Positions 766 through 31,370 of a DNA stretch of 64,000 bases are shown here, one piece after another. Under the pieces are notes generated by a model that saw only the letters and a list, made by a program, of their open reading frames with translations, was not told where the DNA came from and made no database searches. Position 1 is the stretch's first letter. Every line of letters starts with the position of its first letter. The position numbers were made by a program, and so were the translations under genes. Location of the stretch: positions 62,001 through 126,000 of the IMG/VR virus record IMGVR_UViG_3300028569_002417. One strand, given 5' to 3'.

Positions 766-3639
766 ATGTTGGACTTTAGATCATGGCTTTTATTTACCGA
801 AGCACCATCTGATTACACATGGATTGAAAAAGATCCAGAAGATTACGAAACAGAACTTGCAGCTTATATGCAATCAAAACTTGGTAAATTAGGACAAGGT
901 GAAAGGCCAAGCCCCTACAAAAGAGTTATGGCTGACACCATAAAAGGTGTTATGTCTTCAGGTTCAGGTTCAGCAAAAACTAAAAAGAAGAAAAGAAAAA
1001 AGCCTGAAGGAACACCAGAAGAAAGAGCAGCAGCAAGAGAAATATCAAAAATAAAAAGTAAAGAAATAGCTCGCAATCCTCTTGTGCGATATATTAAAGA
1101 AATTGATGACGTATTCATGACTAAACTTGGACTTTTCAAAATAGAAAATGGCAAGAAAGTATTGGCAGAGAAAAGTCTCGCTGATATGATTATGAAAATT
1201 TGTCGTAAAGCTAAAGCGAATTTATTAAGGCGTGGAAAAGAAGTAGATATAGATGATATTTTTTCTGATACCATTAGCATATTGCACACGGCTCCAAAAG
1301 GAATTCTCAATGATAATAGCACCATCCCCGATAATCAGTTCCTAAAAGTAAAAGCAATGCAAAATTCTGATGGGACTTTGCCAGAAGATAAGTATGAAAA
1401 AGTAATGAGTATGGTTGGTAGCCAAGCAAAAAATTATTCTGGATATGTTGGTTGGGAAATAAGCATGTACGGAACAAGATGGAGAGATAGAAAAAATATA
1501 GAATCGCCAGACGTAATTAAATTCGAGCCAATTGCCACAGATAAAAAAACACAAAGACAAAAAGATATTGAAAGAGATGATCGCTTAGCTCTTAGATCAG
1601 GAATAGTAGGATCTCCAGCCGAGAGAATGTTAAATATTGAAAAAGATTTTCCAGACTTTTCTAAAAAGTTACTTGCCTATTTTAATGGTAAAGATTCAAA
1701 CGAGATGCTTCTTCAAATGGTTCGTAAACTTTTTGATGAAATGAAAAAAGATGCTGGAAACCAAAAGATAGTCAACCAAGATGAATTACAAAAAATTGTT
1801 GACAATGCTGAAATTTTATTCGTTGTCAAAAAAGAAGAAACTGCCGAAAGAGTCAAAGAAATTTCAAGAGTACAGCCAGAAACTTACAAATCTGAACGCC
1901 AAAAAAGATTAACTCGTAACCTTATTGGCACAAGCAGAGAGCCTTATACGAGTGTAAAAATTGGAGGAGAAGAAGAAGACGTATTTGCAGAACCTGATGA
2001 AAAGCTAGAAAAGAATGTTTTAAGTGTTATTGACGATTTAATAAATAATTCAACTGCCGAATTAACCAAGGAAAAGTGGAAAAAAATCAAAAAAGTAGCA
2101 TTTTATGTTCTTGATGCTGACCATAGATGGAACAAAAGTCAAGTTGCTGAGTTTTTAAGAACTAGTCCACCAAATGCCGAAATATATATCAAAGAAATCA
2201 GAAAAATAGCAAAAGAAGTTGCTCTTGATCCTAAAGGTCTTGGACTTAATGAGCCTCAAGAAACTGAAGAAATTATTAAAGGTGGAAAAATTCCACTAAC
2301 TCCTTTCCAAAAATCTCTTGCTGCTGGTAAACCTGATCCAAGTCTTAAAAGATTAGTTAGACACGGTGAAAAAGGTCAAAAACACTATACACTTCCCGGA
2401 GATTTTGCACAAGAAAGAAAAGGAACAACTCCTCAACAAGTGGCAAGGAGAGAAGTAAGTGATCAAGAAAAGAAAATAATGGCAGATGATACTCTTCGTA
2501 AAATAAATAAACTTTACAAACTTGATCAGGAAAGAATAAAAAAAGAACAATTGCCTTTATTCGTTGTTGATCAAAGAGTAAGCAACTATGGTGATGCTTC
2601 AGCAACTACAATTGATCCCGGTGAACAGCATAGATCAAGTGTGGCATCAATAAGATTGTGGAAAGCACAATCTGAATTGTCTTATGCCAAAGCAACACTA
2701 GAATCTTATGAAAATAAACTTAGAGAACTTGAAAAACAAGCTGGAAATTTAGATGTTAAGCTATTGAGTGATTTACGAAATAGCAGAGATGAGATGAAAA
2801 ATCAAGTAGATAAGCTTGAAAAGGAAATAAAAGAACTTAAATCGTTGACAGACAAGGAAGTTTCCGTACTAGGAAACATAAAGCGTTCTGAATTAACAGA
2901 TACAGCAGAAACACCTTTCCTTGTAAAATACGATAATGATCCAGAGGCAAGTCCATATGCTAGCAACAAGGGCATGGCAGGTAAAAAGCCTCTTGGAAGA
3001 TTGAAAGCATTGCGTGATATTTTGAACAAAGCAAATGATCCTCGTTTGGACAGCGAAGAAGTAAAGAAACACTTTAATGCTCCTTTACCTCGTGCTATGC
3101 CCGGAGAAAGGCTTCAAGCTCTTCCAGTTGGTCGTTTTACAAATCAGGGTCGTACCAGCAATGCCTATCTTACTGGCTTAAGACCAAGTCAAATTGGTAT
3201 TGATGCCGAAAAATCCTTTATGAATAAATATGTTACCGGAATGCCGGGAATGCGTCCCGGAAAAAAATATTATCCTCATCCCACAGATGATCCAAAAACA
3301 CGACTTGTTCCAGATCTGGATCATGATGTATTATGGGACACTGATTTCGATGGTTATCCCGAAATTCCCGGCAGCAGGGAATACATGAACTGGCAACAAA
3401 ATAGAAAAAGGCCAGAAGCACCAGAAGCACCAGAAGCACCAGAAGCACCACCAGAAGCACCAGAAGCGCCAGTTGGTGCTAAAAAGCGTGGTCGTCCTAG
3501 ATCAACACCAGAAATAATAGCACCAGTTATAGCACCAACTGGCGCTGCAAAGCGTGGTCGTCCTCGCAAAGTTGAATCAACTGGAAATGGATGGATTTCT
3601 TTGTCTGAGCATATGGCTAGAAGGCGTTTTGCATTCTAG
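766..3639 (+). CDS. Large Lys/Glu-rich protein with capsid-targeting-like N-terminus, HTH-like segment, coiled coil and two C-terminal AT-hooks
   Basis: N-terminus MLDFRSWLLFTEA; KKRGRPR and AKRGRPRK near the C-terminus; upstream GTAAATA. Confidence 0.6.
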   Translation: MLDFRSWLLFTEAPSDYTWIEKDPEDYETELAAYMQSKLGKLGQGERPSPYKRVMADTIKGVMSSGSGSAKTKKKKRKKPEGTPEERAAAREISKIKSKEIARNPLVRYIKEIDDVFMTKLGLFKIENGKKVLAEKSLADMIMKICRKAKANLLRRGKEVDIDDIFSDTISILHTAPKGILNDNSTIPDNQFLKVKAMQNSDGTLPEDKYEKVMSMVGSQAKNYSGYVGWEISMYGTRWRDRKNIESPDVIKFEPIATDKKTQRQKDIERDDRLALRSGIVGSPAERMLNIEKDFPDFSKKLLAYFNGKDSNEMLLQMVRKLFDEMKKDAGNQKIVNQDELQKIVDNAEILFVVKKEETAERVKEISRVQPETYKSERQKRLTRNLIGTSREPYTSVKIGGEEEDVFAEPDEKLEKNVLSVIDDLINNSTAELTKEKWKKIKKVAFYVLDADHRWNKSQVAEFLRTSPPNAEIYIKEIRKIAKEVALDPKGLGLNEPQETEEIIKGGKIPLTPFQKSLAAGKPDPSLKRLVRHGEKGQKHYTLPGDFAQERKGTTPQQVARREVSDQEKKIMADDTLRKINKLYKLDQERIKKEQLPLFVVDQRVSNYGDASATTIDPGEQHRSSVASIRLWKAQSELSYAKATLESYENKLRELEKQAGNLDVKLLSDLRNSRDEMKNQVDKLEKEIKELKSLTDKEVSVLGNIKRSELTDTAETPFLVKYDNDPEASPYASNKGMAGKKPLGRLKALRDILNKANDPRLDSEEVKKHFNAPLPRAMPGERLQALPVGRFTNQGRTSNAYLTGLRPSQIGIDAEKSFMNKYVTGMPGMRPGKKYYPHPTDDPKTRLVPDLDHDVLWDTDFDGYPEIPGSREYMNWQQNRKRPEAPEAPEAPEAPPEAPEAPVGAKKRGRPRSTPEIIAPVIAPTGAAKRGRPRKVESTGNGWISLSEHMARRRFAF
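3412..3471 (+). repeat. 9-nt coding tandem repeat (CCAGAAGCA, Pro-Glu-Ala) x6
   Basis: Read directly from the sequence. Confidence 0.95.
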
Positions 3640-3656
3640 AAATTTAAGGAGGGATC

Positions 3657-4199
3657 TTGGCTCTATGTAATTTGGATGGAACTCCATATCAATTAAGAGG
3701 TAGTACTCAAATGTTCGATCCATTGGATCGAACACACGACCTTTTTAATTTGTGGGATCAGGAAGCGATCAAGAGAGGTGGATCTCCGATTTATTATTAT
3801 GAGGTTATAATCAGTCCTGATATGATTGACCCTATTTATTTGGAAGCGAGAAATAAATTATTTTCAAACAATCCTGTTGAGTTGTGGTGTACTTATGAGC
3901 CTATACCTTCACAGAACTTATTGAATCAGTTTGGAATTGATGCTCCAGATGAAATGAAGTTTGAACTTAATTATCGTGCTGTTTTGCAAAATGTAGGACA
4001 TCCTCCTAAAATTGGTTCGAGATTGTTTACTCCACATCTTAGAGAAAACTGGGTTGTTGTTCAAAGAAACTTAGGTGAATTCAAGATGTGGGGAGCTTTG
4101 AGATTGGAATTGATTTGTCAGAGATTCCAAGAAGATGTTGTTACTGGAGAAGGTAAGGTTACAGAAAAACAACCTGATATCAAAATTAAAATTGTTTAA
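3657..4199 (+). CDS. Neck/head-closure protein, T4 gp14-like
   Basis: TTG start after AGGAGG. Motifs G..IYYY, IYLE..NK.F, QFGID..DE..F; located upstream of gp15/sheath. Confidence 0.65.
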   Translation: MALCNLDGTPYQLRGSTQMFDPLDRTHDLFNLWDQEAIKRGGSPIYYYEVIISPDMIDPIYLEARNKLFSNNPVELWCTYEPIPSQNLLNQFGIDAPDEMKFELNYRAVLQNVGHPPKIGSRLFTPHLRENWVVVQRNLGEFKMWGALRLELICQRFQEDVVTGEGKVTEKQPDIKIKIV

Positions 4200-4210
4200 C
4201 GAGGTGATAT

Positions 4211-4552
4211 ATGAAGTCTTTTTATGAGTTTTATCTTCAGATTCAAAGAGAAGCAGCATTAGCTCCTGCTGCTCCTGCGGCTGGTGCTGCTCCTGCCCCT
4301 GCTGCTGGTGCTGCTCCTGCTGCTGCTGCTGCCCCTGCTGCTGGTGCTGCTCCTGCTGCTCCCGGTGCTGTTGGTACAGCCCCTCCTGCTGCTCCTGTTT
4401 CTAAAGACCCCGCAATTGCCAGTTTAGCAACTGCTATTGCTAAAAACCCAGCGGGATTTAAGGTTTATAAGGATGCATTGGTCAAAGTTACAGATACCAA
4501 ATTGAAGCCAGCAGTAGATTCACTATTAGCTGCTCTCAATATTCCAAAATAA
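4211..4552 (+). CDS. Ala/Pro-rich putative internal head protein
   Basis: GAGGTG SD; N-terminus MKSFYEFYLQIQREA; PAAGAAPA repeats. Confidence 0.65.
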   Translation: MKSFYEFYLQIQREAALAPAAPAAGAAPAPAAGAAPAAAAAPAAGAAPAAPGAVGTAPPAAPVSKDPAIASLATAIAKNPAGFKVYKDALVKVTDTKLKPAVDSLLAALNIPK

Positions 4553-4697
4553 AGCTTTGTCTTTTGAATAGATTTGGTTTATGAATTTTTGGGAAGTACC
4601 AAAGAGGTAATTTAGGTTTTTGAAAAGAAGTCACTGGTTCACCTGCGATATAGGGGATGAATCTTTGACTTCTTTTTTTTATTTTATAATTTTTCAT
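4536..4697 (-). CDS. Small basic hypothetical protein (53 aa)
   Basis: MKNYKIKKRSQRFIPYIAGEPV...ILEY*; its ATG overlaps the upstream stop (ATGA) and it fills the intergenic gap. Confidence 0.45.
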   Translation of the reverse strand: MKNYKIKKRSQRFIPYIAGEPVTSFQKPKLPLWYFPKIHKPNLFKRQSFILEY

Positions 4698-5524
4698 TTT
4701 TCTTTTTTCTTTGGGAAGAAAATTTTCTTTTTCGTTATTTTTCTATATTTTCTATAAGTTTCATCAGCAATACTTTGCAGGAATTGGTGTACGCCTTCTT
4801 TCCCTTTTTTAACATAAATTCTGTTTAGGATTTTATATTTGTCATCAAAGTTATTTCCTTTATTATCATACCAATCATTTTCTGTAAATTTTTTGCAGAA
4901 TGTTTGAATTGAGTCATCTAGAAGTCCTCTTGCGGATTGTTCTCCTGATGTCATTGGTTTAATTTCGTATAGAACTTTACGAGGAACTATGAGTATTTGT
5001 GCGTATGGTTCATTTTTTCTAAAAATATAAGTTTGTCCCGGCATTGGATTTTTGAAAACAACAAAAAATATTTTTGGCCACATGATTGTATTAATGTGAC
5101 CCGGTATTACTAAAGGAACGGTATAAGTTTCATCGGTATAATATCTTGGGTGAGGTTCGATACGAAGAACATATCCATCAGGAACTTCAATATCGAGGCA
5201 TGATGTCATGCCAAAATGTCCGGGTGCGAATGTTGAAAAGGGAGGCATTATGGAATTTGGCAAAATTTTATTTTCTTCTGTGAAGTCACCTATAAATTTT
5301 ACTTCACCATTAATTGTTTTAACATGAAATTCTGTATTAAAAGAATAAAGAAGTTCAAGTCCATAGGTAGATCCTTCAACAAATGGAGTGCAATGCCAAG
5401 GTTGAGGTATATCTCCATCTTTATGATCATTTGGTTCACCAGACCATCCGGGAATCTGCAATCGAATATGTTGAGGAGGCTGGCCCTGATACCAAGACCT
5501 GTATTTCAGCAGTATTTTTTCCAT
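4694..5524 (-). CDS. DUF6065-like / dUTPase-fold protein
   Basis: HCTPFVEG..YGLEL and FRKNEPYAQIL motifs. Start moved to MEKILL because the longer call overlaps the divergent gene. Confidence 0.5.
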   Translation of the reverse strand: MEKILLKYRSWYQGQPPQHIRLQIPGWSGEPNDHKDGDIPQPWHCTPFVEGSTYGLELLYSFNTEFHVKTINGEVKFIGDFTEENKILPNSIMPPFSTFAPGHFGMTSCLDIEVPDGYVLRIEPHPRYYTDETYTVPLVIPGHINTIMWPKIFFVVFKNPMPGQTYIFRKNEPYAQILIVPRKVLYEIKPMTSGEQSARGLLDDSIQTFCKKFTENDWYDNKGNNFDDKYKILNRIYVKKGKEGVHQFLQSIADETYRKYRKITKKKIFFPKKKEK

Positions 5525-5553
5525 AAACAAACCTAGATAGATGAGGAGAAAAA

Positions 5554-6537
5554 ATGAATCCAACTGGAAATCATGGTCAAAGACCTCTTGATCAATGCAA
5601 TGATGTTGGCGGCTCACAAGATCCAATCCTTGATAAAGCGCCTCCATATTGCGAACCTGATCTTAGCAATAATCTGAGAAAAATCAATGACGAAAGTATG
5701 AATTGGCTTAAAGATCAGGCCATGCAAAAGACTGGTTTCGGAGCAAGGGCTGATAGCGACCCGATGCAAAAAGGCAGGATTATCAATGATCCTGATAATC
5801 CTGATCGTACTGTTCTTTATCGTTACTCAAAATCAATTCGTGGTTCTGATGAAGCAATGCTTGATCTTTTCCGCAATGTAATTGTGATTGACGAAGACGG
5901 AAAAGGTTGGCCAATTCCAATTATGCTTGGTCCACCAGAAAAAGCTGTTGCAGCGATGATCCAAGAAAATATTCGTAAAGATGAAACACTTGTTGTGAAT
6001 AGAATTAGATTGCCGATGATGGCTTTAACACAAGGAAGTATTGAATATGATTTAAGCAGATATACTTATCACAAAGCATTGAATTTTTTCCAACAATATG
6101 ATGGATCACCGGGAACGACAATAAGCGAAAAATATAAAAAAGATACTGTTTTGGGATTTGCAAAAGGTATTCCGGTTAATATTGGATATGCTTTAACTGC
6201 TTGGACAATGTACAGAGAAGACATGAACCAAATAGTAGAGCAAATAATTACAAAATTTAGTCAAGTTGCATACATACGAGTGACTGGTGTACCGTGGGAG
6301 GTAATAGTTAAATTAGATTCAATTGCGAACAACCTGAATAATGAGCCGGGTGATCAGCAAATTAGAGTTATAAAATACGAATTTAATATGACCGTACAGA
6401 CATATATACCTCAGCCAATTGAACGTAAGAAATCTGTTCTAAAAATGAAAGTTGACTTTGTTGACGGAATTACAGATCAGGAAATTACAGAGGTTTTAGG
6501 CAGAATTGAAAAGACAGTAAAGGAATTGGAATGTTAG
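5554..6537 (+). CDS. Tail terminator / sheath stabiliser, T4 gp15-like
   Basis: LPMMAL...IEYD..R and IPVNIGY.L......DMNQIVEQI motifs; upstream of the sheath gene. Confidence 0.8.
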   Translation: MNPTGNHGQRPLDQCNDVGGSQDPILDKAPPYCEPDLSNNLRKINDESMNWLKDQAMQKTGFGARADSDPMQKGRIINDPDNPDRTVLYRYSKSIRGSDEAMLDLFRNVIVIDEDGKGWPIPIMLGPPEKAVAAMIQENIRKDETLVVNRIRLPMMALTQGSIEYDLSRYTYHKALNFFQQYDGSPGTTISEKYKKDTVLGFAKGIPVNIGYALTAWTMYREDMNQIVEQIITKFSQVAYIRVTGVPWEVIVKLDSIANNLNNEPGDQQIRVIKYEFNMTVQTYIPQPIERKKSVLKMKVDFVDGITDQEITEVLGRIEKTVKELEC

Positions 6538-6752
6538 AAATAACGAATAAGAAGAGACATCCAGTGCAATTGATCATCAGGTCTAGGAGAGCCACAAAGT
6601 CTTTCACTACTCTAAATCTTCCCGGCGTTGGAGCAGGGAAAAATATTTTTGTTTTGGAAGATGAAAGATCAACACCATATATAGATAGAGCAGAAAAAGA
6701 TGGATTAATTTCCATAAGGCAAATAACAAACAAGTTACGAAAGGGAGAATAA
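6531..6752 (+). CDS. Hypothetical protein
   Basis: Co-oriented 73-aa ORF tightly packed between gp15-like and sheath genes. Confidence 0.65.
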   Translation: MLEITNKKRHPVQLIIRSRRATKSFTTLNLPGVGAGKNIFVLEDERSTPYIDRAEKDGLISIRQITNKLRKGE

Positions 6753-6756
6753 GACT

Positions 6757-9120
6757 ATGGCGATTCTTAAAGGTTTTCCACCATCTAATACAATCAGCCC
6801 AAGTGTTAGAATTGCTGAAAAAGACTTGAGCTTCATCGCACCTGAACAGTCAACGCATACGGCAGGATTGGTTGGATTTGCCTCTAAAGGCCCAGTCAAT
6901 CTTCCTATTGCGATTGCTACTTCACGTCAGTTGCATACAACTTTTGGCAATCCTCATCCTGATATGGGTGATCCATTCTTGATTTATGCAGCAGATCAAT
7001 ATCTCCTCGTCGCAAATACACTTTATGTAGTGCGTGTTGCAGATACCGATCCTGTTTCTGATGAGCAGGCTACAACCGCTTCAGTAGATGTTCTGGCAGC
7101 TGGATCAATTATTGAAATTGAAGCTAACGGCGAAGCCGGTCCTTACACTTTTGACGAAGATTCATTCTTCCGTTGGAAACTTAATGGTCAGCTTTCAACA
7201 AAAACACTAGTTGTTCTTGCAGATACATATACAACTGATGAACTTGTCATAGCTTTGAATGATCAGCTTGATACTATTCTTGACGGTATTGAGTTTTACG
7301 CAAATACCTCTGATGAAATTGGTGTAAAAACCGTTTGGGCCTATGGACCTAGCGCCAGCCTTGAACTGGTTTCAATTCAGAATGCAATTTACGGTGGTTC
7401 TGTAAACGATACAGATAACATTCGTGACAACCCAACTGGTTTGGGTACAGGCATGACCCGTGCTTCAGTAACAGGTTCTAATGATCGTTGGCCAATCAAT
7501 GGCTATCAGGTTTCTGGCCATTATGAATTCACAGGTCTTACCGATCAGGTAATTGAGCTTGTGGTCGATGGCACTGATAATATTTTGATTGATCAAGTTG
7601 TTCAGACAATTACAATCGCTGATGGCGCTGCTTACACAAGCATCAACGATGTTATCTCTGATATTAATGATCAGAAGGCTGAAAACGGCGGAACTCTTCC
7701 CGGTGGCTGGACAGCACTAGCCTCTGGAACACAGCTTCGCTTCGTTACTAATCATCATGGCGCTGATGCTCGTCTTCGCATCAAGCCAGCTAGCACTGAA
7801 GTTTTTGGACTTTCAACTCTTACCGTAACTGGTACAAGTCCTGAAGGTACAACTGGCTCAGTCAGCATCGAAACTTTTGGTTTGGTTAACGGTGGTGCAA
7901 ATAGCGGTGGCGATGTTTCCTTTGTTATAAACGCTGATTCACCGGGCATTGATGGTAACGTAACTCAAGTTCTTATCACTAATAGCTCTGTTGATTCAAC
8001 TTTTAACTTGGAAGTTTATGCAAATGGAGTTCAAGTTGAATCTTGGGGCAATCTGACAAAGAATGCAACAAGCCGATTCTATGTTGAAACCTATTTGGCT
8101 CTGGTATCTGATTATGTCAGACCTATAGACAACACCTTAGTTGGCGCTGGTCCTGCTAGTGGCACTTACAATCTTGCAGGCGGCTCTGACGGTATCCCCG
8201 CAGATCCTGACAAGCAAGACGTGCTTCTAATGGGCAGTCCTATTGGCTACACAGGCATTTATACTCTCAGCGAACCTGAGCAAGTAAATATTGACCTGAT
8301 TGCAGTTCCCGGTCACTCAAGCACAGCAGTTGTTCAAGAACTTCTACTGTTCTGTCGTGACTATCGTCAAGATTGTCTTGCAATCATCGACGCTCCTTTC
8401 GGTTTGACTGTTAAGGAAGTTGTTGCTTGGCAGAACGGTGCTCATCCGCTTAACAATACTCGATTTGATAGCGATTTTGGCGCACTTTACTGGCCTTGGG
8501 TTAAAATCTATGATCCATACAACAAAGTTGATGTATGGTGTCCTCCAAGCGGTTCAATCATGGCAGTTATCGCTCGTAGCGATTTTCTGGGAGCTCCTTG
8601 GTTTGCTCCAGCTGGACTTACTCGTGGTGTTGTTCCTAACATTACAGATGTCTATAGTCGTCCTACTTTGGAAGAACGTGATACGATGTACGGCAATCGC
8701 AACTGCGTAAATCCAATCATACAGTTCGCTGATGTTCAAGGTTTCGTGGTATTCGGCCAGAAAACCTTGCAGCGCACTCCTACTGCTCTTGACCGTGTTA
8801 ATGTTCGCCGTCTGATGTTTTATATCGAGAAGGCTATTCGCACCGCAAGTCGCACCTTGTTGTTCGATCCAAATGATGGAATTTTCCAGCAGAAGTTTAT
8901 AACTATCGCAGAAAATATTCTTAGTCAGGTTCAAGTTGGTCGTGGGTTGACTGCTTATATTATCAAAGCCGATGCCGAACTCAATACTGTTGATGTTATC
9001 GACCGTAATGAATTCCGTGCAAGAATTGGTGTGCAACCAACCCGTGCTGCTGAATTTATGTTCATCGAATTCTCGATTCACAGAACTGGCAGCTTTGTAG
9101 TAGGCGCTGAAACATTCTAA
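6757..9120 (+). CDS. Contractile tail sheath protein (gp18-like)
   Basis: SPSV.I.EKD, ALYWPW, PPSG, PWFAPAG, NPI, GQKT, DRVNVRRL, QPTRAAEF motifs. Confidence 0.97.
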   Translation: MAILKGFPPSNTISPSVRIAEKDLSFIAPEQSTHTAGLVGFASKGPVNLPIAIATSRQLHTTFGNPHPDMGDPFLIYAADQYLLVANTLYVVRVADTDPVSDEQATTASVDVLAAGSIIEIEANGEAGPYTFDEDSFFRWKLNGQLSTKTLVVLADTYTTDELVIALNDQLDTILDGIEFYANTSDEIGVKTVWAYGPSASLELVSIQNAIYGGSVNDTDNIRDNPTGLGTGMTRASVTGSNDRWPINGYQVSGHYEFTGLTDQVIELVVDGTDNILIDQVVQTITIADGAAYTSINDVISDINDQKAENGGTLPGGWTALASGTQLRFVTNHHGADARLRIKPASTEVFGLSTLTVTGTSPEGTTGSVSIETFGLVNGGANSGGDVSFVINADSPGIDGNVTQVLITNSSVDSTFNLEVYANGVQVESWGNLTKNATSRFYVETYLALVSDYVRPIDNTLVGAGPASGTYNLAGGSDGIPADPDKQDVLLMGSPIGYTGIYTLSEPEQVNIDLIAVPGHSSTAVVQELLLFCRDYRQDCLAIIDAPFGLTVKEVVAWQNGAHPLNNTRFDSDFGALYWPWVKIYDPYNKVDVWCPPSGSIMAVIARSDFLGAPWFAPAGLTRGVVPNITDVYSRPTLEERDTMYGNRNCVNPIIQFADVQGFVVFGQKTLQRTPTALDRVNVRRLMFYIEKAIRTASRTLLFDPNDGIFQQKFITIAENILSQVQVGRGLTAYIIKADAELNTVDVIDRNEFRARIGVQPTRAAEFMFIEFSIHRTGSFVVGAETF

Positions 9121-10706: not shown

Positions 10707-11252
10707 TCAAAGATCACTAACAATATTGTGTCTTTTATAAAGATTTTTGCTTTTAGTTGCAGGAAGTTTTTGATCGAATTGAATTTGTATGAAATCAAGA
10801 TATTTTCTTTTCAGTTCATTATAGTTTCTTGCGGTTCGATATAATTGACGAAAATGGTTAAGTATACATGTTGTCATATAGTTAAAAGCTTTGCCTTTAT
10901 CTGGGTCGAAACGATCAATTTTTTCAAAGCATATCATAACCCCTTCTTGAACTGCATCATCTTGATCAATTAGATTAAATTTTGCATATCTCACAATATT
11001 TTCTGAAAGTGTATAAAAAGCAATGGCAAGTTGTCCTTGCACTTCTTCATATTCTGAGGAAATAATCTTAAATTCTTTTTCGGTTAAAATCCAAGAATCT
11101 GGTTTTTGAAAATTTCCTCTTTTCATGGTTCGATGTTGAGTTTCATTGATATCGTCCATAAAGAGTTGATATTTAATTCTTTCCTTTTTAGATTTCTGAA
11201 AATGTACGATCAAGGACTCAAAGGTTTTATTATTCAAATATTCAGTGGCCAT
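10707..11252 (-). CDS. Late sigma factor, T4 gp55-like
   Basis: YLNNK, DAVQEG...CF..IDRFDP.K.KAFNY.T motif; region 2 only. Confidence 0.85.
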   Translation of the reverse strand: MATEYLNNKTFESLIVHFQKSKKERIKYQLFMDDINETQHRTMKRGNFQKPDSWILTEKEFKIISSEYEEVQGQLAIAFYTLSENIVRYAKFNLIDQDDAVQEGVMICFEKIDRFDPDKGKAFNYMTTCILNHFRQLYRTARNYNELKRKYLDFIQIQFDQKLPATKSKNLYKRHNIVSDL

Positions 11253-20589: not shown

Positions 20590-21177
20590 TTACATCGCAT
20601 CTAATTGGCCTGTGCTTCCACCAAGCGGAGGTGCTGCCATGTCTTGACCTGTTCCTCCTACTGGAGGAGTTCCATCAGGAGCGGCATCCATTGTTTCAGG
20701 AGCAGGAGGAGCGCCTGCTGCCGCTGGAGGAGGAGCAGGCGCAGCAGCTGGTGGCTGTGCTGGTACATTCTCAGTTGGCGATGTTGCTTTTGTTCCTTGA
20801 TTTTGATTTTTAGGACTTTCAGTTGGAGTTAGTTTGTTGATTGGAACACCCATATCGCCAACTAATTTTTCCAACAAACCAGCTGCTCCAGAAATAGCAT
20901 TTGGCAAGTCACTTTTCTCATCAATCGATTTCATTAAGGCCACACCAGCCTTTTGCAAAATAAGCAAATTAGGCTGTTCATCTTTTGGCCAACTACTATG
21001 CAAAACACGACGAATCAAAACAACAATACGCATGGCGTATTGAGTCAGATCTCTTGTTCCCATATTAGGAGCATCTTCCCGCAATTCTTGAAGTGCCGAA
21101 AGAATATCACCAACTTTTTGTGCCAAATAGACACTTGCTTCATTCAAAAGGAATGATTTGAATCCAAATTTCATCAT
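20590..21177 (-). CDS. Putative internal head protein with Pro/Ala-rich tail
   Basis: N-terminus MKFGFKSFLLNEA; ATAGATA 4 nt before the ATG. Confidence 0.65.
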   Translation of the reverse strand: MMKFGFKSFLLNEASVYLAQKVGDILSALQELREDAPNMGTRDLTQYAMRIVVLIRRVLHSSWPKDEQPNLLILQKAGVALMKSIDEKSDLPNAISGAAGLLEKLVGDMGVPINKLTPTESPKNQNQGTKATSPTENVPAQPPAAAPAPPPAAAGAPPAPETMDAAPDGTPPVGGTGQDMAAPPLGGSTGQLDAM

Positions 21178-22814
21178 GCTTTATCTATAGTTTGAACAAC
21201 ACTTTTATTTTTAACAGCAGCCGCTATTAATCCCTTAAAAAGAGGCGAAGCTGACAACAAACGAGACTTAAATTCAGGATGCGCTTGAGTACCAATAAAA
21301 TAAGGATGAATTGATTTATCCATCTCCATGATTTCTACCAGCCCCGATCCTGTACTTGCTCCAGAAATATGAAATCCTTTTTTTGAATACTGATCAGTAA
21401 ATTCATGATTTACTTCATATCTGTGCCTATGACGCTCATTAATTATTTTATTTCCATATAATTCTAAAGCTAAACTTTCTTTCTTTAATTCGCACTCATA
21501 AGCTCCAAGTCTCATATTGGCTGACTTCTTCTCTAATTTTTCCTGACCCTCAACAAAATGAACAACAGGATATTTGGTTTCTTTGTTAAACTCTAAACTG
21601 TTGGCATCTTCCATTAAACAAACATGTCTCGCAAATTCAATAACTGCCATTTGCAAACCCAAACAAATCCCCAAGAAAGGAATTTTTCTTTCTCGAACAT
21701 ATTGTATGGCTTTAATTTTTCCTTCTGTACCACGGTTATCAAAGCCACCCGGAACAACTATCCCATCCAATCCTTCAAAATACTTATGAAGACCACGACT
21801 GTCTTTGTATTTTTCTAATTCTTCTGCCTTAATCCAACGAATATTTACCTTTACATCATTCGCTACACCAGCATGTATCAAAGCTTCTTTGAGACTCATG
21901 TAAGCTTCATCGCAATTATCATATTTGCCAAATACGCCAATTTCAATTGCCTTTTCATGATTACCAACATATTTTTCAACAACATCACGATACTTGTGAA
22001 TACGACAAGAGCTTCTATTAAGCCTAAATAAGTCAACAAACAAATCATCAATATGACGATTGTAAAATTCTAAAGGAACCTGATAGATGCTTGAAACATC
22101 AGGTGCCTCAAAAATACATTCTCTTTTTACATTTGTTTGCTGACTTATTTTAGTCAAAATCTTTTCTGGCACTTGTCTATCAACACGACAAAAAATTGCA
22201 TCTGGCTGCAATCCATGACGCTGTAATTCCTTAACAGCATTCTGCAATGGCTTACTCTTGAATTCTTTAATGGTATTGACCCAAAGAATGGGAGCGACCA
22301 TGACAACTAAAACATCATCTTTAAGCTTTTGCTTAAATTGACGCATAGCCTCAAAAAAAGCATAACTTTCACTGTCTCCAACAGTTCCACCAATTTCTGC
22401 AATCACTACATCTTTGTCTTTGCCAAGATCAAGAAGTCTTTCATGAACCTTATCTGTGATGTGTGGGCTAAGTTGAAGAGTTTGGCCTAAATACTTTCCT
22501 TCTTCTTGCTCTTCAACGAGTTCCTTGTAGAGTGTTCCAGAAGTACAAATGTTATTTTTGCTCATATTTATCCCGGCAATTCTTTCATAATGGCCGAGAT
22601 CGAGATCTGTTTCTGTCCCATCGTCACAAAGAAAGCATTCGCCATGCTCACGAGGAGCTAAAACACCAGCATTTGTATTCAAATATGGATCAAATTTAAT
22701 TAAATTAATTCTATGTCCACGAAATTTAAGCAAAAGGCCGATACTTGCAGCAGAAACCCCTTTTCCTGTACCACTAATTACTCCACCGACTACAATAATA
22801 TACTTGCAGGACAT
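21174..22814 (-). CDS. pyrG: CTP synthase
   Basis: GGVISG.GKG, DPYLN, ETDLDLGHYER, EIGGTVGD, GICLG, RHRHRYE, HPEF. Confidence 0.98.
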   Translation of the reverse strand: MSCKYIIVVGGVISGTGKGVSAASIGLLLKFRGHRINLIKFDPYLNTNAGVLAPREHGECFLCDDGTETDLDLGHYERIAGINMSKNNICTSGTLYKELVEEQEEGKYLGQTLQLSPHITDKVHERLLDLGKDKDVVIAEIGGTVGDSESYAFFEAMRQFKQKLKDDVLVVMVAPILWVNTIKEFKSKPLQNAVKELQRHGLQPDAIFCRVDRQVPEKILTKISQQTNVKRECIFEAPDVSSIYQVPLEFYNRHIDDLFVDLFRLNRSSCRIHKYRDVVEKYVGNHEKAIEIGVFGKYDNCDEAYMSLKEALIHAGVANDVKVNIRWIKAEELEKYKDSRGLHKYFEGLDGIVVPGGFDNRGTEGKIKAIQYVRERKIPFLGICLGLQMAVIEFARHVCLMEDANSLEFNKETKYPVVHFVEGQEKLEKKSANMRLGAYECELKKESLALELYGNKIINERHRHRYEVNHEFTDQYSKKGFHISGASTGSGLVEIMEMDKSIHPYFIGTQAHPEFKSRLLSASPLFKGLIAAAVKNKSVVQTIDKA

Positions 22815-22882
22815 TACAATCACCTCTGCCTCTAAAAGAGTAGAAACAGCCTAACAAAGACCAATAAAATTAACAAGTCTAA

Positions 22883-23515: not shown

Positions 23516-23528
23516 AACTATTTCCCTT

Positions 23529-23561
23529 AAAAATATTTGCCGTCACTAAGACGGCAAATAT
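23529..23561 (-). terminator. Terminator after nrdA
   Basis: ATATTTGCCGTC-5-GACGGCAAATAT perfect 12-bp stem. Confidence 0.8.
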
Positions 23562-23592
23562 GAATTGTTGATCTAAAACAATAACTTAAAAA

Positions 23593-25236: not shown

Positions 25237-26210
25237 TAGAATAAATCCTCCGCTGTAAACGACTTCGTGAACTTACTGTAAGTGACTGGTTTCTTGTGGA
25301 AGAAATCAGTATTCACTTCGGCATGAATTTCGTCTTCAAACCACTTCAAATCCTTCAGTTTTTCCATATCAACATCGAAGTGCTTTTCGGCACCAATCAT
25401 TGCCAAACTCTCGTTGAAGCGATGTTTAACGAATTCCTTCACTACATCCTTGGTAAGAAATGGTAAGTTGCCAGCCTCAAAAATCCAATCAACAATTTTT
25501 GATTCTGCTTCATAAGCCTTGGCGCAAGCTCTTTGAAGTTTCGCATAAAAATCGTCATTGAACCAATTTAGATGTTCCTTCTTAACTTGCTTGACTATGT
25601 AAACGCCAAGAAGCGCATGAATCGCTTCTTCTTTTTGAGTAGCTTGCACAACATTATCAATATCTTTCAAGCAATTCATATATTTGTTGAAAGATTTGAT
25701 AATTAAAAACTGAGAAAACAAACTTACGTTCTCAATGAATATGCTGAATAATGCCAATGTGAGAGTGTAGTTTTCGTTGCTATTATCTGAAGCACCTTTT
25801 AGATACTTTGTAAGATAATCGACTCTGCCTTGGATGACAGGATTTTGGAGTAATTGATCGAATTCATTATTCATCCCAAGAACTTCAAGAAGGTGGGAAT
25901 AAGCGTCAGCGTGACGAACTTCTGATTCACCAAATGTAACGCCTACTTGTTCAAATTCGGCTTTTGGGAATCTTTCTCCTAATTTTGTCCAAAATTTCTT
26001 GACCGAAATTTCAATCTGAGAAATGGCGAGCATAGCGTTCTTAAGAACATTTCTTTCGATATCATTTAGTTTAACATTAAAATCATGAATGTCACCTATG
26101 AAATTCCATTCACTTACAAGCCAATAGCTATGATTGATCGCATCTTTGTATCCGATGATTTCTGGGTACTCGAATGGCTTGAAAGCCACTCGTTTTTCAA
26201 AAATACTCAT
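25236..26210 (-). CDS. nrdB: Ribonucleotide reductase beta subunit, class Id-type
   Basis: E67, K71, E97, H100, Y104 counted from MSIFEK; EE.IH; DFF C-terminal motif. Confidence 0.95.
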   Translation of the reverse strand: MSIFEKRVAFKPFEYPEIIGYKDAINHSYWLVSEWNFIGDIHDFNVKLNDIERNVLKNAMLAISQIEISVKKFWTKLGERFPKAEFEQVGVTFGESEVRHADAYSHLLEVLGMNNEFDQLLQNPVIQGRVDYLTKYLKGASDNSNENYTLTLALFSIFIENVSLFSQFLIIKSFNKYMNCLKDIDNVVQATQKEEAIHALLGVYIVKQVKKEHLNWFNDDFYAKLQRACAKAYEAESKIVDWIFEAGNLPFLTKDVVKEFVKHRFNESLAMIGAEKHFDVDMEKLKDLKWFEDEIHAEVNTDFFHKKPVTYSKFTKSFTAEDLF

Positions 26211-26245
26211 ATTTTTCCTTCCCAACTAATCTGTTGGCGTCTCAA

Positions 26246-26274
26246 ATAATACTGGGAAATTATCTAAACATCAA
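26246..26274 (-). promoter_or_regulatory. Sigma70-like promoter of nrdBA
   Basis: TTGATG-17-TATTAT. Confidence 0.55.
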
Positions 26275-26301
26275 GATCTAAAAATACAAAAATAATTTTT
26301 A

Positions 26302-28344
26302 CTATACAACCAATTTTGTAAAACCATTTTCATGAACAAGATTAAGAACATCAGTGGTTTGTAGCATTCTTAAAAGATCTGCATCATGTGTTGTGACAAA
26401 GACTTGGCGATCTTCGCTGAGTTCACAAATCATGTTGTAAATTCCTATGTTCCCAACAGGATCAACATTGGTAGAAATTTCATCTAAAAACAATATTGAA
26501 GGAACAGAACCAGAGCTTATAGACATAATATGGGCAAAGGCCTGACTGACTGCTAGATTCAATCTTCTACGTTGTCCTGTTGACATAGCGAAGTAAATGT
26601 AAGGATCGCCATCAGGAGGATTTCTTTCGATCTTTTCATTCAATTCATTGTCAAATTTCAATGTGATTTTATTGTCGATCAAGAATTGAAGCCAATAATT
26701 GATGCGATTGTTGAGTTCTGGAATAATCCCATCAACAATCCATTTGCGAATCCCATTATCGCCAAATCCTGTGATCCAATAATCATAATAAGGAAGTTCA
26801 GCCTCTAAAGACTTTACTTCAGTCTCTTTTTCTGCGACAGCGTTTGTTGCTTTTTTAAGTTCTTCTTCATCATTCTCCATAATTTCCTTAAATGGACTTT
26901 CTCCTTCCAATTCTTTTTTCTTTTCAAAAATCTGATCTTTGAATTGTTGTATTTTCTGTTGAAGCAATGCTTCTTCGTTATCTGTTTTAGGTTCACGAAC
27001 CTTACTAGCTTCGACTAATTCTTTACGCCAAACAATTAAATCTTGATCAATTGCAGAAATTTGCTTGGTAAAGTTTGAAATATATTCCTTGATTTTATCC
27101 TGTTTTGCCTTAACAGCATCTGCCTTTACTTGAATTTCCTTGCCAGAAACAACTAGTTTTTGCAATTTCACATTTATATCATTTATATCTTTTTGAAGTT
27201 TATCGATATATTCGTTTATATTTTCTTCCAGAATTTCACCTTTACATTTATCGCATCTAGTTCCGACCTCATTGGCCTTGAGTTTAGCTATTTCTTTTTC
27301 TTTTTCTTGTCTATTTCCAATTAAAATTTTGCTATTGCGAGCAACCTCTTGATACTCTTCATGAATACTTTGAGCTTCGATTTTGATTTCAGAATCTTTA
27401 TTCTTTGCTAATTGGAATTTAGATTCCAATTCTTGTTTAGATTTTTCTTTTTCTGGCATTTTTTCATTGATGGACTTGATGCTTTCTTGAGCTTTTTCAT
27501 AAGCTAAAACGGCAGCGCCGTTGTCTGATGAGCCAAGCATTTTTATAAATCTATCAGCACTGGCAATCAGATTGCTTATTTCATTTTTCTTATCTTCACG
27601 CCATTTTCCTTCTTTTTGTTTGGTTAAGGCCAAGCGTCTTACAGCATCATCTTTACTGTTCACGAACAATGTATATTCTTTTGCCTTAATGTCAATTTTA
27701 CTTTTAATTTCCTTGCGAAGTGTTTTGGCATTTTCAAACCATTCTCGATAAACGCCCAGAGAAAGCATATTCTCAACTATTTCTTTTTTTTGTTTGCTTT
27801 CACATTCAAGAAAACATGCTCTTTGATCATCGGTGAAAACAGACATGTTGATAAAAGCTTCATAGGAAAGACCAATTATTTCTTCTATTTTTTTCTGTGT
27901 AAGGGACATTGTTCCTTGTGTGATTTCAGTGTTTTTATCCCAAACAGCTTCTTTGCTTTCCCAAAGGCGCAATGAGTTCTTGGTGTCTTTTCCACCTTCT
28001 TTTCTTGTTCTAATGATGCGAATGTCATCAAAGATTAATTCAACTTTAGCATCTTTGCCAATTTTGTTATGAACTACATCATTTGCGCCTAATTTTTCTG
28101 GTCTTTTAACAGTTTTTCCAAAAAGCCCATATGATATTATTTCTTGGATGCTGCTTTTACCTGTTCCGTTGCTGCTTATTTTCATTTCATCGGAAAGTAA
28201 AGATGAATCAATCTTTTTAGCGTCACGGTTTTCGCCACGAACTAAAACTATATTTTGATAATTATCAAAATGAATATTTATTCCTTCTGGTCCGAATGGA
28301 AGAAAGTTATATGCAGCAGCAAATTTGAATTTAAGATTTTTCAT
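26302..28344 (-). CDS. sbcC: SbcC/Rad50/gp46-like ATPase
   Basis: NGTGKS, coiled coil with CDKC hook, STGQ, LFLDE, TTH; probable start MKNLKF. Confidence 0.95.
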   Translation of the reverse strand: MKNLKFKFAAAYNFLPFGPEGINIHFDNYQNIVLVRGENRDAKKIDSSLLSDEMKISSNGTGKSSIQEIISYGLFGKTVKRPEKLGANDVVHNKIGKDAKVELIFDDIRIIRTRKEGGKDTKNSLRLWESKEAVWDKNTEITQGTMSLTQKKIEEIIGLSYEAFINMSVFTDDQRACFLECESKQKKEIVENMLSLGVYREWFENAKTLRKEIKSKIDIKAKEYTLFVNSKDDAVRRLALTKQKEGKWREDKKNEISNLIASADRFIKMLGSSDNGAAVLAYEKAQESIKSINEKMPEKEKSKQELESKFQLAKNKDSEIKIEAQSIHEEYQEVARNSKILIGNRQEKEKEIAKLKANEVGTRCDKCKGEILEENINEYIDKLQKDINDINVKLQKLVVSGKEIQVKADAVKAKQDKIKEYISNFTKQISAIDQDLIVWRKELVEASKVREPKTDNEEALLQQKIQQFKDQIFEKKKELEGESPFKEIMENDEEELKKATNAVAEKETEVKSLEAELPYYDYWITGFGDNGIRKWIVDGIIPELNNRINYWLQFLIDNKITLKFDNELNEKIERNPPDGDPYIYFAMSTGQRRRLNLAVSQAFAHIMSISSGSVPSILFLDEISTNVDPVGNIGIYNMICELSEDRQVFVTTHDADLLRMLQTTDVLNLVHENGFTKLVV

Positions 28345-28377
28345 GTCAAGCCTTGCCGGTGATGAAAACAACGATTG

Positions 28378-28406
28378 AACTTAACACGGCAAGGCTAAAA
28401 AATCAA
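28378..28406 (-). promoter_or_regulatory. Sigma70-like promoter of sbcC
   Basis: TTGATT-17-TAAGTT with extended TG. Confidence 0.45.
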
Positions 28407-28414
28407 GCTTTTTA

Positions 28415-29110
28415 TCAACTAATGAATAGTTTTCTTGATAATTTTATTTTATTGGAAATTTCATATGACTTGAAAATATCGGAATATCTTTCATAGAACA
28501 TCAAATTTTTTCTTAGAGCAAGTTTTTTAAGTATTCCAGTTGGATGTATGACTGTTTGAACTTCTTCATGTAAGGATAAAAGTCCATTATTATCTTTAAG
28601 ATCTGGAACATTAATGCAGTTGAATTTATCATCGATGAATTTCACATCTGATGCGAAATATTTAACCATACATTCGACTTTATTTTCATCTTTCATGACT
28701 GAAGTTATTTTGTTTATAATGTCAAATTTTTGCCAAGCCTTGTTGCTTCCTGCTAAAAAACCGGGATTATTGTTTTTGACCATGATCATTTTGTCTTCAA
28801 TCAAATCGAAAACATGATCTATTTTTTCTTGAAACCAACAATCTGCGTCAAAATATGCAATATTGCCATCTAAATTTTTACTTAAATTTATTATGGAAGA
28901 TAAGGTAGCGTTCCTGATATTTGAATTATGGTTTTCTTTTTGAACTAATACGTCGATTTCATTTAATTTTTTTTTGGTATAATTATTCAGGCCAAAATCA
29001 ACAACAATAATTTTACATGATGTTTGAGATAATTCTTTCAATGAAGCAATCCATGAAATTCCCCATGGATTCCAATATTGATCATTCATGCCTGTTACGA
29101 TGAAATTCAA
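28415..29110 (-). CDS. GT-A fold (nucleotide-diphospho-sugar transferase-like) protein
   Basis: VVDFGL, YFDADCWFQ (DxD), N.GF.AG, IH. Confidence 0.65.
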   Translation of the reverse strand: MNFIVTGMNDQYWNPWGISWIASLKELSQTSCKIIVVDFGLNNYTKKKLNEIDVLVQKENHNSNIRNATLSSIINLSKNLDGNIAYFDADCWFQEKIDHVFDLIEDKMIMVKNNNPGFLAGSNKAWQKFDIINKITSVMKDENKVECMVKYFASDVKFIDDKFNCINVPDLKDNNGLLSLHEEVQTVIHPTGILKKLALRKNLMFYERYSDIFKSYEISNKIKLSRKLFIS

Positions 29111-29113
29111 TGG

Positions 29114-30169
29114 TCACTCCGGTCTTACACAAATTTTTTGGCCTATCGCCAATAACTTTTCACGGTCTAGACCTTCGTGTCCAACCTGATCGGCATACTT
29201 GGCAAGCATTTCGTCGCCTTTATATAGAATAGCTTTAGCATCATGAATTATATGTTCATCAATGGTTTTTTTGTGCTGTTTTATTTCCAGACTTGCAAGA
29301 TTGCTGTTTTCAAGTATTTCTTTTTTAACATTTATCAGGTCTGTTGCGCCAATATCATCCACTTTTATTTGAACATAATTACCTTCAAGTTGATATTTTT
29401 CCTTATCTGCATAATTAATGACAAGATGCTTTGGGCTGAAATTATTTTCAATGTATTCTTTTTCGTTCTTATCTCCATCGAAAACAATTATATGTTTCTT
29501 TTGGAATGCTTCGCCAAAGCTTAACTGCAATGGAGATCCAATGTATTCAACCTTTTTATTAACACGTTGTTCAGCATGATAATGGCCTAAAAAGGTGTGT
29601 GTGTAATCATTAAACAAAGCTGCGCTAATCGGAACCATGTCTCCATCATGTTCTATTGTTACATCAGAATGTTGAGAGCCATGAAGTATTGCGCCGTCCA
29701 ATGCTATATGACCTAAAGCATATTCCATCATGCTGTGAAGCTTTTTTAATTCTTCAAGAGATTCAATTGGATTGTGGGTATAGGGAATAAAGTCCCAATT
29801 ATGGCCTTCTATTTCAATTCTAGACGGTTTTGAGATTACATGTACGTTTGGCAAAGAAGAAAGAGGCATGACGCTACTTATTGTGGTTTTATCGTTAAAC
29901 CATAAATCATGGTTTCCAAGAAGGAGATATATGTCAAAAATATTTTTATTAGATGAATTGGCGAATATTTCAAAAACTTTTTGATAGGTATATATCTCAA
30001 TTTTTTGACGATCATGAAAAAGATCGCCTCCAAACAAGATTGATTTGATTTTTAGTTTTTCAGCAGTGTCAAAAACCCATTGAAGAGCCTTGAGACAATC
30101 TTCAAGCCTTTGATTGCTTCTCTTGTGTGGGTGTAAATGAATATCACTGAAAAGTAAAACTTTAGACAT
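29114..30169 (-). CDS. sbcD: SbcD/Mre11/gp47-like nuclease
   Basis: SDIH, GGDLFH, GNHD, GH, LGHYH, YIGSP; true start MSKVLL after AGGAG. Confidence 0.95.
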   Translation of the reverse strand: MSKVLLFSDIHLHPHKRSNQRLEDCLKALQWVFDTAEKLKIKSILFGGDLFHDRQKIEIYTYQKVFEIFANSSNKNIFDIYLLLGNHDLWFNDKTTISSVMPLSSLPNVHVISKPSRIEIEGHNWDFIPYTHNPIESLEELKKLHSMMEYALGHIALDGAILHGSQHSDVTIEHDGDMVPISAALFNDYTHTFLGHYHAEQRVNKKVEYIGSPLQLSFGEAFQKKHIIVFDGDKNEKEYIENNFSPKHLVINYADKEKYQLEGNYVQIKVDDIGATDLINVKKEILENSNLASLEIKQHKKTIDEHIIHDAKAILYKGDEMLAKYADQVGHEGLDREKLLAIGQKICVRPE

Positions 30170-30260
30170 GATTCTCTCCTTAAGAAGCAGTATTGCAAAA
30201 TTTGCTTGGAAAATACAAGTGCAAAGCAATAAAATGTAGCAAGGGACCATAAATAAAACA

Positions 30261-30689
30261 ATGATAACTTTCAGACAATTTATCGAACACAAGTTGTTTA
30301 CGGAAGAAGATGCTCCGGGTGGCGCACCACCCGGTGGTCCTCCCGGTGGAGCTTCACCTATGCCCATGCCTCCCGGTGGTGCAGGTGGTCCTCCCGGTGG
30401 TGCTGGACCTGCTCCCGGTGGTGCTGGACCTGCTCCCGGTGGTGCAGGTGGTCAGACTGCTGCTAAAAAATTGCGTAGTTATAATTTCTGGGATTCTGCT
30501 GAAAAGATTCTTGATCCAGAAAAATCCGAAGAAAAACCTCAAGATGATGAAGAAGCTCCTCCAGAAGAGGAAGCACCTCCACCAGAAGCTGGTCAAGAAG
30601 CTCCACCTGCTCCTGAAATGGGAGGAGCAACTCCACCTGCCCCAGCTGATATGGGTGCCGAAGCTCCTCCTGCTCCACCAGCTGCTTAG
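30261..30689 (+). CDS. Pro/Gly/Ala/Glu-rich putative internal head protein
   Basis: MITFRQFIEHKLFTEE; four 21-nt repeats at 30369-30452; ATAAATA 5 nt before the ATG. Confidence 0.7.
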   Translation: MITFRQFIEHKLFTEEDAPGGAPPGGPPGGASPMPMPPGGAGGPPGGAGPAPGGAGPAPGGAGGQTAAKKLRSYNFWDSAEKILDPEKSEEKPQDDEEAPPEEEAPPPEAGQEAPPAPEMGGATPPAPADMGAEAPPAPPAA

Positions 30690-30782
30690 AAAATATCTTA
30701 AAAAATTCTTCTTTATTACGAAGATTCTTACTGGGCAAGGATGCCTTGTTTTAATTATTTTTCACTTATGCATAAATAAAAC

Positions 30783-31370
30783 ATGATGTCTTTTAGTCAA
30801 TTTATTGAAATTAGAGAAGGATTTGGCCCTTATATAGGACCATGTGTTGATACTGATAATTATCAGGTTCAAGGAGCTTGCAGTCAACTTAATTCTGATT
30901 CTAAAAATGCGAAGATTAGCAAAGGCGAATATAAGCATAAGAAAAAGAAAAAGCATCGTTTGAAAAACGAAGAAGCATTAGCAAATCCCAAGACTGCTGT
31001 TACTGGAGCAAGTTCTCCGCTTCTCGTATCTGCTCCTGTGGCAGATAGAGAAAAATGGAGTGCTAGCAAGAAAGATATCTTGAATTTTTGGAAAACGCTT
31101 GAGGCCAACAAGCCAATTACAACAAGTCCAATTAAATATGGTTTCAAGGGATCAACATATAGCGAAGATGGAATCCGTATAACAGGAAGTCCTGCTTATA
31201 TAACAAGTGTAATAAGTCATCTAAAAGACTTCTTAGCTTATGAGAACCCACAAAGCAAGCTAGCTGTTTCATATCGTGAAACACAATCTCCAAGCAAGAT
31301 TGCCACTGGACAAAGCAAGACAAGTTATGTATTTTACATTGCCGTCAAGGACAGAGGCGATAAAAACTAA
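30783..31370 (+). CDS. Putative internal head protein
   Basis: MMSFSQFIEIREG; ATAAATA 4 nt before the ATG. Confidence 0.7.
   Translation: MMSFSQFIEIREGFGPYIGPCVDTDNYQVQGACSQLNSDSKNAKISKGEYKHKKKKKHRLKNEEALANPKTAVTGASSPLLVSAPVADREKWSASKKDILNFWKTLEANKPITTSPIKYGFKGSTYSEDGIRITGSPAYITSVISHLKDFLAYENPQSKLAVSYRETQSPSKIATGQSKTSYVFYIAVKDRGDKN

Follow-up and report, generated by a model that had tools for sequence, protein, structure and literature searches.

Five genes in a 64,000-nucleotide (nt) stretch of viral DNA (bases 62001-126000 of IMG/VR record IMGVR_UViG_3300028569_002417; hereafter the window) begin with the same short N-terminal leader, and this leader is probably a capsid-targeting propeptide of the phage T4 type, which would be cut after a Glu residue and would mark proteins that are packaged in the head and probably ejected from it. 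What was computed here comprises the motif itself, how far it exceeds chance expectation, its modular behavior and conservation, and the presence of T4-type head genes in related genomes. The five genes, with leaders read from their translations, are P0005 [957 amino acids (aa), 766..3639, plus strand; leader in the first 12 codons, 766-801, with a matrix score of 20.2], P0004 (113 aa, 4211..4552, plus strand; first 14 codons, 4211-4252), P0001 (195 aa, 20590..21177, minus strand; first 13 codons, 21139-21177), P0002 (142 aa, 30261..30689, plus strand; first 15 codons, 30261-30305) and P0003 (195 aa, 30783..31370, plus strand; first 12 codons, 30783-30818). An earlier note on this DNA had quoted these five N-termini as a set, and all five open reading frames (ORFs) translate as quoted. 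The scale of the set was, however, wrong, as approximately 26-28 members are present on the contig and a comparable number in each of two relatives.

The leader consists of Met, 1-5 residues, Phe, two residues, an aromatic residue (Trp, Phe or Tyr) and Leu or Ile, and its end is usually hydrophobic-x-Glu. Leader length ranges from 8 to 15 residues (mode 12) and the Phe position varies from residue 3 to residue 7, with the Phe, the aromatic residue at +3 and the Leu/Ile at +4 being near-invariant. A position matrix was built from 22 starts picked by coordinate and used to score every ATG opening an ORF of at least 40 codons. With corrected starts, this placed the 26-28 leader members across the whole of the source record, a linear virus contig of 225,527 bp with a GC content (guanine plus cytosine) of 36%, and only five credible ORFs among them lie in the window. 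The contig is a genome fragment with a completeness rating of 52%, and counts per contig are thus roughly counts per half genome. Scanning the genome for the motif, as the earlier note had suggested, put the same start on many further ORFs. The strict pattern was matched by 14 called gene starts in a crude gene call of 251 genes covering 90% of the contig, compared to 0.92 ± 0.95 matches when residues 2-20 were shuffled per gene (maximum 6 in 2000 shuffles) and to an expectation of 0.6 from the internal rate (3 of 1182 internal Met positions matched). A sixth match in the window, at 57836, was rejected as a 47-aa ORF in the wrong frame inside a 1982-aa gene, and two weak matrix scores, for a 463-aa sugar kinase/cytidylyltransferase and a portal-fragment ORF, were set aside as chance matches that have no aromatic pair. 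A Sec/Tat signal peptide, which would need a hydrophobic core of approximately 10-15 residues behind a basic N-region, was also rejected, the leaders being amphipathic and acidic, with no member reaching a 19-residue Kyte-Doolittle window above 1.6 (maximum 1.21).

The same leader start was found in related genomes of very different base composition. A search with the window's sheath protein gave 49 related loci in IMG/VR, among them contigs 254, 262 and 343 kb in length, and two of these relatives (G003 and G001), at 55-56% GC compared to 36% here, have 24-26 ORFs each with this start. Neither genome was used in building the matrix, and the test on them was confined to the matrix columns that surround the aromatic pair, avoiding downstream bias. 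For G003, 18 of 873 first-ATG starts passed compared to none of 1110 internal Met starts (Fisher P = 3e-7), and for G001 the corresponding counts were 23 of 1141 and 3 of 1616 (Fisher P = 8e-7). This excess at first ATGs and the retention of the leader across 36% and 55-56% GC indicate a conserved N-terminal signal at the protein level. Orthologues of P0002, P0003 and P0001 vary in their leader residues except at the Phe, the +3 aromatic residue, the hydrophobic positions and the Glu. The P0001 orthologue in G001 has 43% identity and retains the leader pattern and the Glu, and the pattern is likewise retained in the P0002 orthologues in L012 and G003, where the remaining leader residues differ. 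A word search with P0003 retrieved 76 metagenomic homologues, 72-74 of which have the leader at their start; 58 of the 76 were aligned, with identity to P0003 down to 34%. Among the 74 leaders of this family that could be anchored, the anchor Phe is present in 71 and stands at residue 3-4 in 70, and the +3 position is occupied by Trp (34), Phe (28) or Tyr (12), the anchoring pattern itself having demanded an aromatic residue there.

The leader behaves as an exchangeable module that ends sharply after the Glu. Across 75 members from three genomes the mean column identity is 4% and the Pfam domains are unrelated, with the leader being the sole common part. Where the P0004 gene stands, locus L010 has a pair of genes that differ in their bodies and share its 14-residue (42-nt) leader, and the three 42-nt copies (P0004 and the two in L010) show one synonymous difference through the Glu codon and are divergent from the next codon onward. 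The P0005 orthologue in L010 has an identical leader followed by a body with large insertions, and in the P0003 homologues the linker between the leader and the conserved C-terminal domain is hypervariable in both length and content. The duplication in L010, in which a ribosome-binding site and leader were copied as a unit with near-identical DNA onto two different bodies, is what would be expected if the shared start were a functionless relic of duplication or recombination, a cassette of promoter plus first codons that shuffles genes in plastic regions. We consider this highly improbable, since most leaders differ in both DNA and residues with only the pattern kept, and the pattern persists down to approximately 35-40% body identity in the 76 homologues and across distant genomes, and this demands that the peptide be under selection.

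The conserved positions coincide with those mapped in the T4 internal proteins. The first 10 residues of IPIII suffice for packaging, with residues 4 and 7 acting in targeting and residues 8 and 10 in processing (PMC9026906). The T4 Ip proteins, which are injected and inhibit host restriction, have only the leader in common (PMC3012670, PMC12373910), and the internal proteins number 10 or more across the T-even phages (PMC12373910). The near-invariant leader positions found here are the equivalents of IPIII residues 4, 7 and 8, and several leaders of the P0003 family show the T4 arrangement almost residue for residue. The ip genes, alt and the head genes were taken from the T4 record, and 751 ATG starts in 81 kb were scored with the matrix from our contig. 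ipIII ranked 4th, ipII 23rd and ipI 24th of the 751 (top 3%), with no score for alt, gp67, gp68 or gp21-23. The likeness to the T4 leader drawn in the earlier note is thus borne out by the coincidence of the mapped residues, the rank of the ip genes, the modular boundary and the T4-type head genes of the relatives.

These head genes were identified in four relatives (G001-G004) with a sheath identity of 62-75%. Each has matches to the prohead protease family Peptidase_S77/gp21 (E values of 1e-26 to 1e-29) and to the major capsid protein gp23 (E = 1e-88), which correspond to the T4 families PF03420 and PF07068. The gene order in G003 and G004 is a portal gene with an apparent intein, a small gene (G004 only), a leader gene of 113-119 aa on the opposite strand, a gene of 612-616 aa, the protease gene, a coiled-coil scaffold gene and the gp23 gene. 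The 612-616-aa gene beside the protease gene also has a leader-like start, and the protease is thus flanked by leader-type genes. This neighborhood is where T4 has the prohead core genes 67 and 68, as read from the T4 record. When the relatives' gp23 was aligned to T4 gp23, hydrophobic-x-Glu sites were present at the place that we take to be the T4 cleavage site. On our own contig a capsid gene was sought, and three highly expressed-looking ORFs had no match in PHROGs, Pfam, PDB sequences or the Atlas. The portal genes of G003 and G004 (L075 2475-5033 and L076 1-2523) encode 840-852 aa with an apparent intein-like insert, and a gp21-like protease gene lies at L076 5051-5728. In G004 there is a 333-aa ORF between the protease and scaffold genes that on visual inspection resembles a homing endonuclease.

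Many leader genes also share a TANATA box very close to the start codon. In the window, TAAATA boxes end 5 nt ahead of the P0002 start (30250..30255, plus strand) and 4 nt ahead of the P0003 start (30773..30778, plus strand), and a variant TAGATA box (21182..21187, minus strand) ends 4 nt ahead of the P0001 start. The TAAATA box of P0005 (741..746, plus strand) ends 19 nt ahead of its ATG and is followed by a purine-rich ribosome-binding stretch. No TANATA box was found upstream of the P0004 gene, which has a Shine-Dalgarno site and lies close behind the preceding gene. The late motif reported in the earlier note as standing directly upstream of four of the five genes was therefore as described for P0002 and P0003, but loose for P0005, by distance, and for P0001, by its variant sequence. 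Contig-wide, a TANATA box ending 4-5 nt before the ATG was found in 16 of 28 members compared to 9 of 225 other genes (P = 5e-12), and the identical spacing was found in 12 of 24 members in G003 and 18 of 26 in G001, both relatives of 55-56% GC. Most genes with an abutting box have no Shine-Dalgarno site. A TANATA box also occurs approximately 30 nt upstream, ahead of a Shine-Dalgarno site, at the scaffold gene of G004 and at several structural-looking genes of our contig, a placement that fits a T4-late-type promoter. A gp55-like sigma factor encoded in the window (10707..11252, minus strand; weak match to phrog_234 "late sigma transcription factor", E = 3.6e-7) is a candidate reader of these boxes. 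If TANATA is a -10-type late element, the mRNAs of the leader genes would be leaderless or nearly so.

The tight association of the box with the motif in three genomes is also what would be expected if the conserved start reflected a constraint on translation or transcription, in which case selection on the first codons of leaderless mRNAs could concern ribosome loading or their role as the initially transcribed sequence. We regard this as improbable, though less so than a recombination relic. At the amino-acid level the motif is preserved between genomes of 36% and 55% GC while its register to the ATG varies, approximately 40% of members have the same peptide behind ordinary Shine-Dalgarno leaders with no abutting box, and the nine box-bearing genes that are not members do not have the motif. 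This conservation of the peptide between GC-divergent genomes makes both the translation-based and the recombination-relic explanations unlikely.

The proteins that carry the leader are diverse. Members range from 57 to 957 aa, none of 27 has a membrane-like segment compared to 12 of 223 other genes, and they are mostly basic, with a median isoelectric point of 8.9 compared to 6.3 in other genes (P = 0.003). One member on our contig is a flavin mononucleotide (FMN) reductase whose domain begins 9 residues after a 10-residue leader. Members in the relatives have Pfam matches to a 2H/Acb1-like phosphoesterase, a NIF-type phosphatase, a CCA-type nucleotidyltransferase, a radical SAM protein and a UvrD-like helicase, and a further one, close to the head module, is a C39/C70-like cysteine peptidase. 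A 184-aa leader protein of G001 (L104 2135-2686, minus strand) matches the Acb1 family of 2H phosphoesterases, which act against the cyclic-oligonucleotide-based antiphage signaling system (CBASS), with 37 bits compared to a cut-off of 27. In the T4 record, gene 57B adjoins ipI and is annotated as an RNA ligase; we presume that it is T4's own Acb1. Some of these domains would fit an anti-defense role.

Based on the likeness to T4, we infer core binding, cleavage, packaging, ejection and late timing for the leader proteins. The leader would fold into a short amphipathic helix, and its pair of aromatic residues, spaced three apart, would attach the newly made protein to the prohead's scaffolding core. 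Its hydrophobic-x-Glu end would then be cut by a prohead protease of the gp21 family, leaving the mature protein free inside the head, from which it would exit with the DNA at the next infection. In this lineage of huge freshwater phages the tag would have spread to unrelated cargo genes by the dozen, and the cargo includes basic DNA-binding-like proteins, Pro/Ala/Gly-rich disordered proteins and, in the relatives, enzymes.

Several observations weigh against this interpretation. The T4 leaders reach only 2-5 bits under the matrix from our contig, mainly because a T4 Tyr stands where this lineage has Phe. On our contig Peptidase_S77, gp23 and the T4 portal are all without a match, and the link to a gp21 protease therefore rests on the relatives. 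The hydrophobic-x-Glu site follows the motif in 48 of 76 members compared to 20 of 90 (22%) internal control sites and 21 ± 3.6 (28%) in shuffles (P = 1e-7), a count that is partly circular since the selecting matrix rewards Glu; in relatives' members selected without the Glu columns it was found in 50-60%. In 37% of members there is no clear site of this kind. The sheath and tube genes have no TANATA box directly upstream, and the box does not establish the label "late". The FMN reductase, radical SAM protein, CCA-type nucleotidyltransferase and UvrD-like helicase resemble ordinary cytoplasmic enzymes, and approximately 26-28 tagged genes per half genome is far above the 3 in T4 and the at least 10 across the T-evens. 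A complex prediction for the G004 protease and a 45-residue N-terminal piece of the neighboring leader protein gave a score of 0.00, which is not evidence either way. The nature of the cargo, its very large number and the missing Glu-ending site in about one third of members would all be accommodated if the leader were instead a docking helix for another phage hub, such as a chaperone, a replication or transcription factory, or a degradation or stabilization factor, with the tagged proteins being directed to that site in the infected cell and never packaged. This is the main rival explanation and we consider it unlikely. It does not explain the coincidence with the T4 targeting and processing residues, the leader genes flanking the prohead protease of the relatives or the enrichment of hydrophobic-x-Glu, and no candidate hub is known.

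The five window proteins differ in what follows the leader, and four of them (all but P0005) had no match in PHROGs or Pfam. P0005 has a Lys-rich body with a coiled-coil stretch, a Pro-Glu-Ala repeat and, near the C-terminus, two R-G-R-P AT-hooks (the first at approximately 3481-3510); its Pfam AT_hook match, at 17.5 bits, is just above the cut-off of 17.4, and there is also a weak coiled-coil match. The Pro-Glu-Ala tandem repeat (3300-3460) lies just ahead of the AT-hooks and is Pro-Val-Ala in the L010 orthologue. The body of P0004 is Ala/Pro/Gly-rich, P0001 has a helical N-terminal domain and a Pro/Ala-rich tail, and P0002 is Pro/Gly/Ala-rich and acidic. The description of three of the five proteins as Pro/Ala/Gly-rich in the earlier note was accurate, with a combined Pro, Ala, Gly, Ser and Gln fraction of 0.69 for P0002, 0.64 for P0004 and 0.46 for P0001, where it is mainly in the C-terminal third. 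Its contrast to the T4 internal proteins applies to these low-complexity members but not to the set, most members being basic as the T4 proteins are. Behind its leader, P0003 has a Cys-containing module, then a Lys-rich stretch and a conserved C-terminal domain of 100 aa. The structure model of P0003 is helical at residues 4-12, and the C-terminal domain was modeled with a predicted local distance difference test (pLDDT) score of approximately 90. Comparison of this domain with the PDB returned nothing significant (best Foldseek E value 0.096; best VIA Z score 4.3). The best Foldseek and VIA matches were both to Alba/SpoVS-like small alpha/beta proteins, and as they were below significance, no fold was assigned. 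Contigs from RNA libraries overlap P0002 and P0003 (30477-31202), which indicates presence only, with start, strand and timing not readable from them.

The window also encodes tail proteins, comprising a gp15-like sheath stabilizer, the sheath protein, two tube paralogues and a baseplate hub, together with a CTP synthase, a ribonucleotide reductase and SbcCD-like proteins. The CTP synthase gene (21174-22823, minus strand; phrog_28378, E = 1e-164) has its nearest match, at 65% identity, in an unannotated record of a 595-kb uncultured phage. The stop of this gene overlaps with the P0001 start at 21177. Nucleotide and protein searches of the "phages" collection did not find a close relative of the contig; the sheath protein had only distant matches there, to T4-type sheaths, and P0005 had none. 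Metagenomes of lakes, freshwater and estuaries, produced in 11 studies, contain near-identical DNA to that of the window. A second common N-terminal pattern was observed on the contig, Tyr-Leu-Ala/Ser-Gly-Val/Ile-Ile/Leu-Asn/Ser-Glu with an aromatic residue a few positions later, and no fewer than four ORFs of 139-394 aa, otherwise different, begin with it [L001 1328 (+), L003 13664 (+), L007 8856 (+) and L001 10819 (-)]. A trypsin-like peptidase gene (L002 9039-9716, minus strand; Pfam Trypsin_2, E = 2.5e-12) adjoins the gene of a 488-aa protein (7564-9030, minus strand) that has no family match and an ESM Atlas model with a mean pLDDT of 0.44 on a scale of 0-1. Two large gene pairs have near-identical N-terminal stretches, one in the window (52230-54464 and 54478-60426; 744 and 1982 aa) and one outside it (L005 12348-18509; 796 and 1248 aa), and both are probably paralogues of a fiber or adhesin whose distal parts have been exchanged.

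Phage proteins that are injected act as first-strike counter-defense factors, of which few are known, since beyond the T-even phages no feature of their sequence marks them. If the leader acts like the T4 signal, the capsid-targeting mechanism would extend to a distant, uncultured and globally distributed lake lineage in which one phage may bear dozens of tagged cargo genes. The tag would then serve as a sequence handle for mining injected effectors from metagenomes, and candidates could be listed by a simple rule (Met, a few residues, Phe-x-x-aromatic-Leu/Ile and a Glu within approximately 8 residues). The pairing of the leader and a promoter box only 4-5 nt ahead of the ATG also raises the question of leaderless late mRNAs in T4-related phages. 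The most far-reaching reading, that widespread freshwater T4-related huge phages load some fifty tagged proteins per virion, including anti-defense enzymes (an Acb1-like phosphodiesterase, proteases and a helicase), and express them mostly from leaderless late transcripts with a promoter abutting the start codon, is tentative and on present evidence doubtful.

Proteins loaded into the head are known from other phages. Two reports on phage P1 (PMC9024508, PMC12810830) describe the Dar system, in which anti-defense proteins are loaded into the head at assembly and injected, with incorporation requiring their N-terminal parts. The Dar proteins have no sequence likeness to the leaders described here and belong to another head lineage. 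P1 uses a hierarchical loading order of protein-protein contacts and is not known to use one leader common to all cargo. In the giant phages phiKZ, 201phi2-1 and SPN3US, many head-internal proteins and a gp21-related prohead protease are described in two further papers (PMC5694885, PMC10052503). The resemblance lies in a very large phage, diverse head-internal proteins, cleavage after Glu and presumed entry into the host, all of which would apply here as proposed properties. Their propeptides are reportedly long and dissimilar, and are said to be cut at small-residue-x-Glu by a gp175/gp245-type protease. We know of no common short N-terminal tag described for that group, whereas the lineage studied here has a common helix of 10-15 residues with a hydrophobic residue at P3, and its capsid and sheath genes match T4-type families.

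The closest parallel is the capsid-targeting sequence of IPI, IPII and IPIII of T4 (Tequatrovirus). The leaders described here are usually 2-4 residues longer and have Phe/Trp in place of the T4 Tyr/Phe. The approximately 26-28 tagged genes per 225 kb compare to 3 in T4, and they are distributed genome-wide, most with TANATA abutting the ATG, compared to the one or two loci of T4. Their cargo of 57-957 aa includes Pro/Ala/Gly-rich disordered proteins and, on the contig and in the relatives, enzymes. In both systems, however, a short leader directly after Met has aromatic residues at approximately positions 4 and 7 with a hydrophobic residue next, and ends, here in most members, in a Glu with a hydrophobic residue two positions before it. 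Both occur in lineages with gp21, gp22 and gp23 head genes, identified here from the relatives, and in both the leader alone is common to unrelated, mostly small basic proteins, its copies marking swappable gene cassettes.

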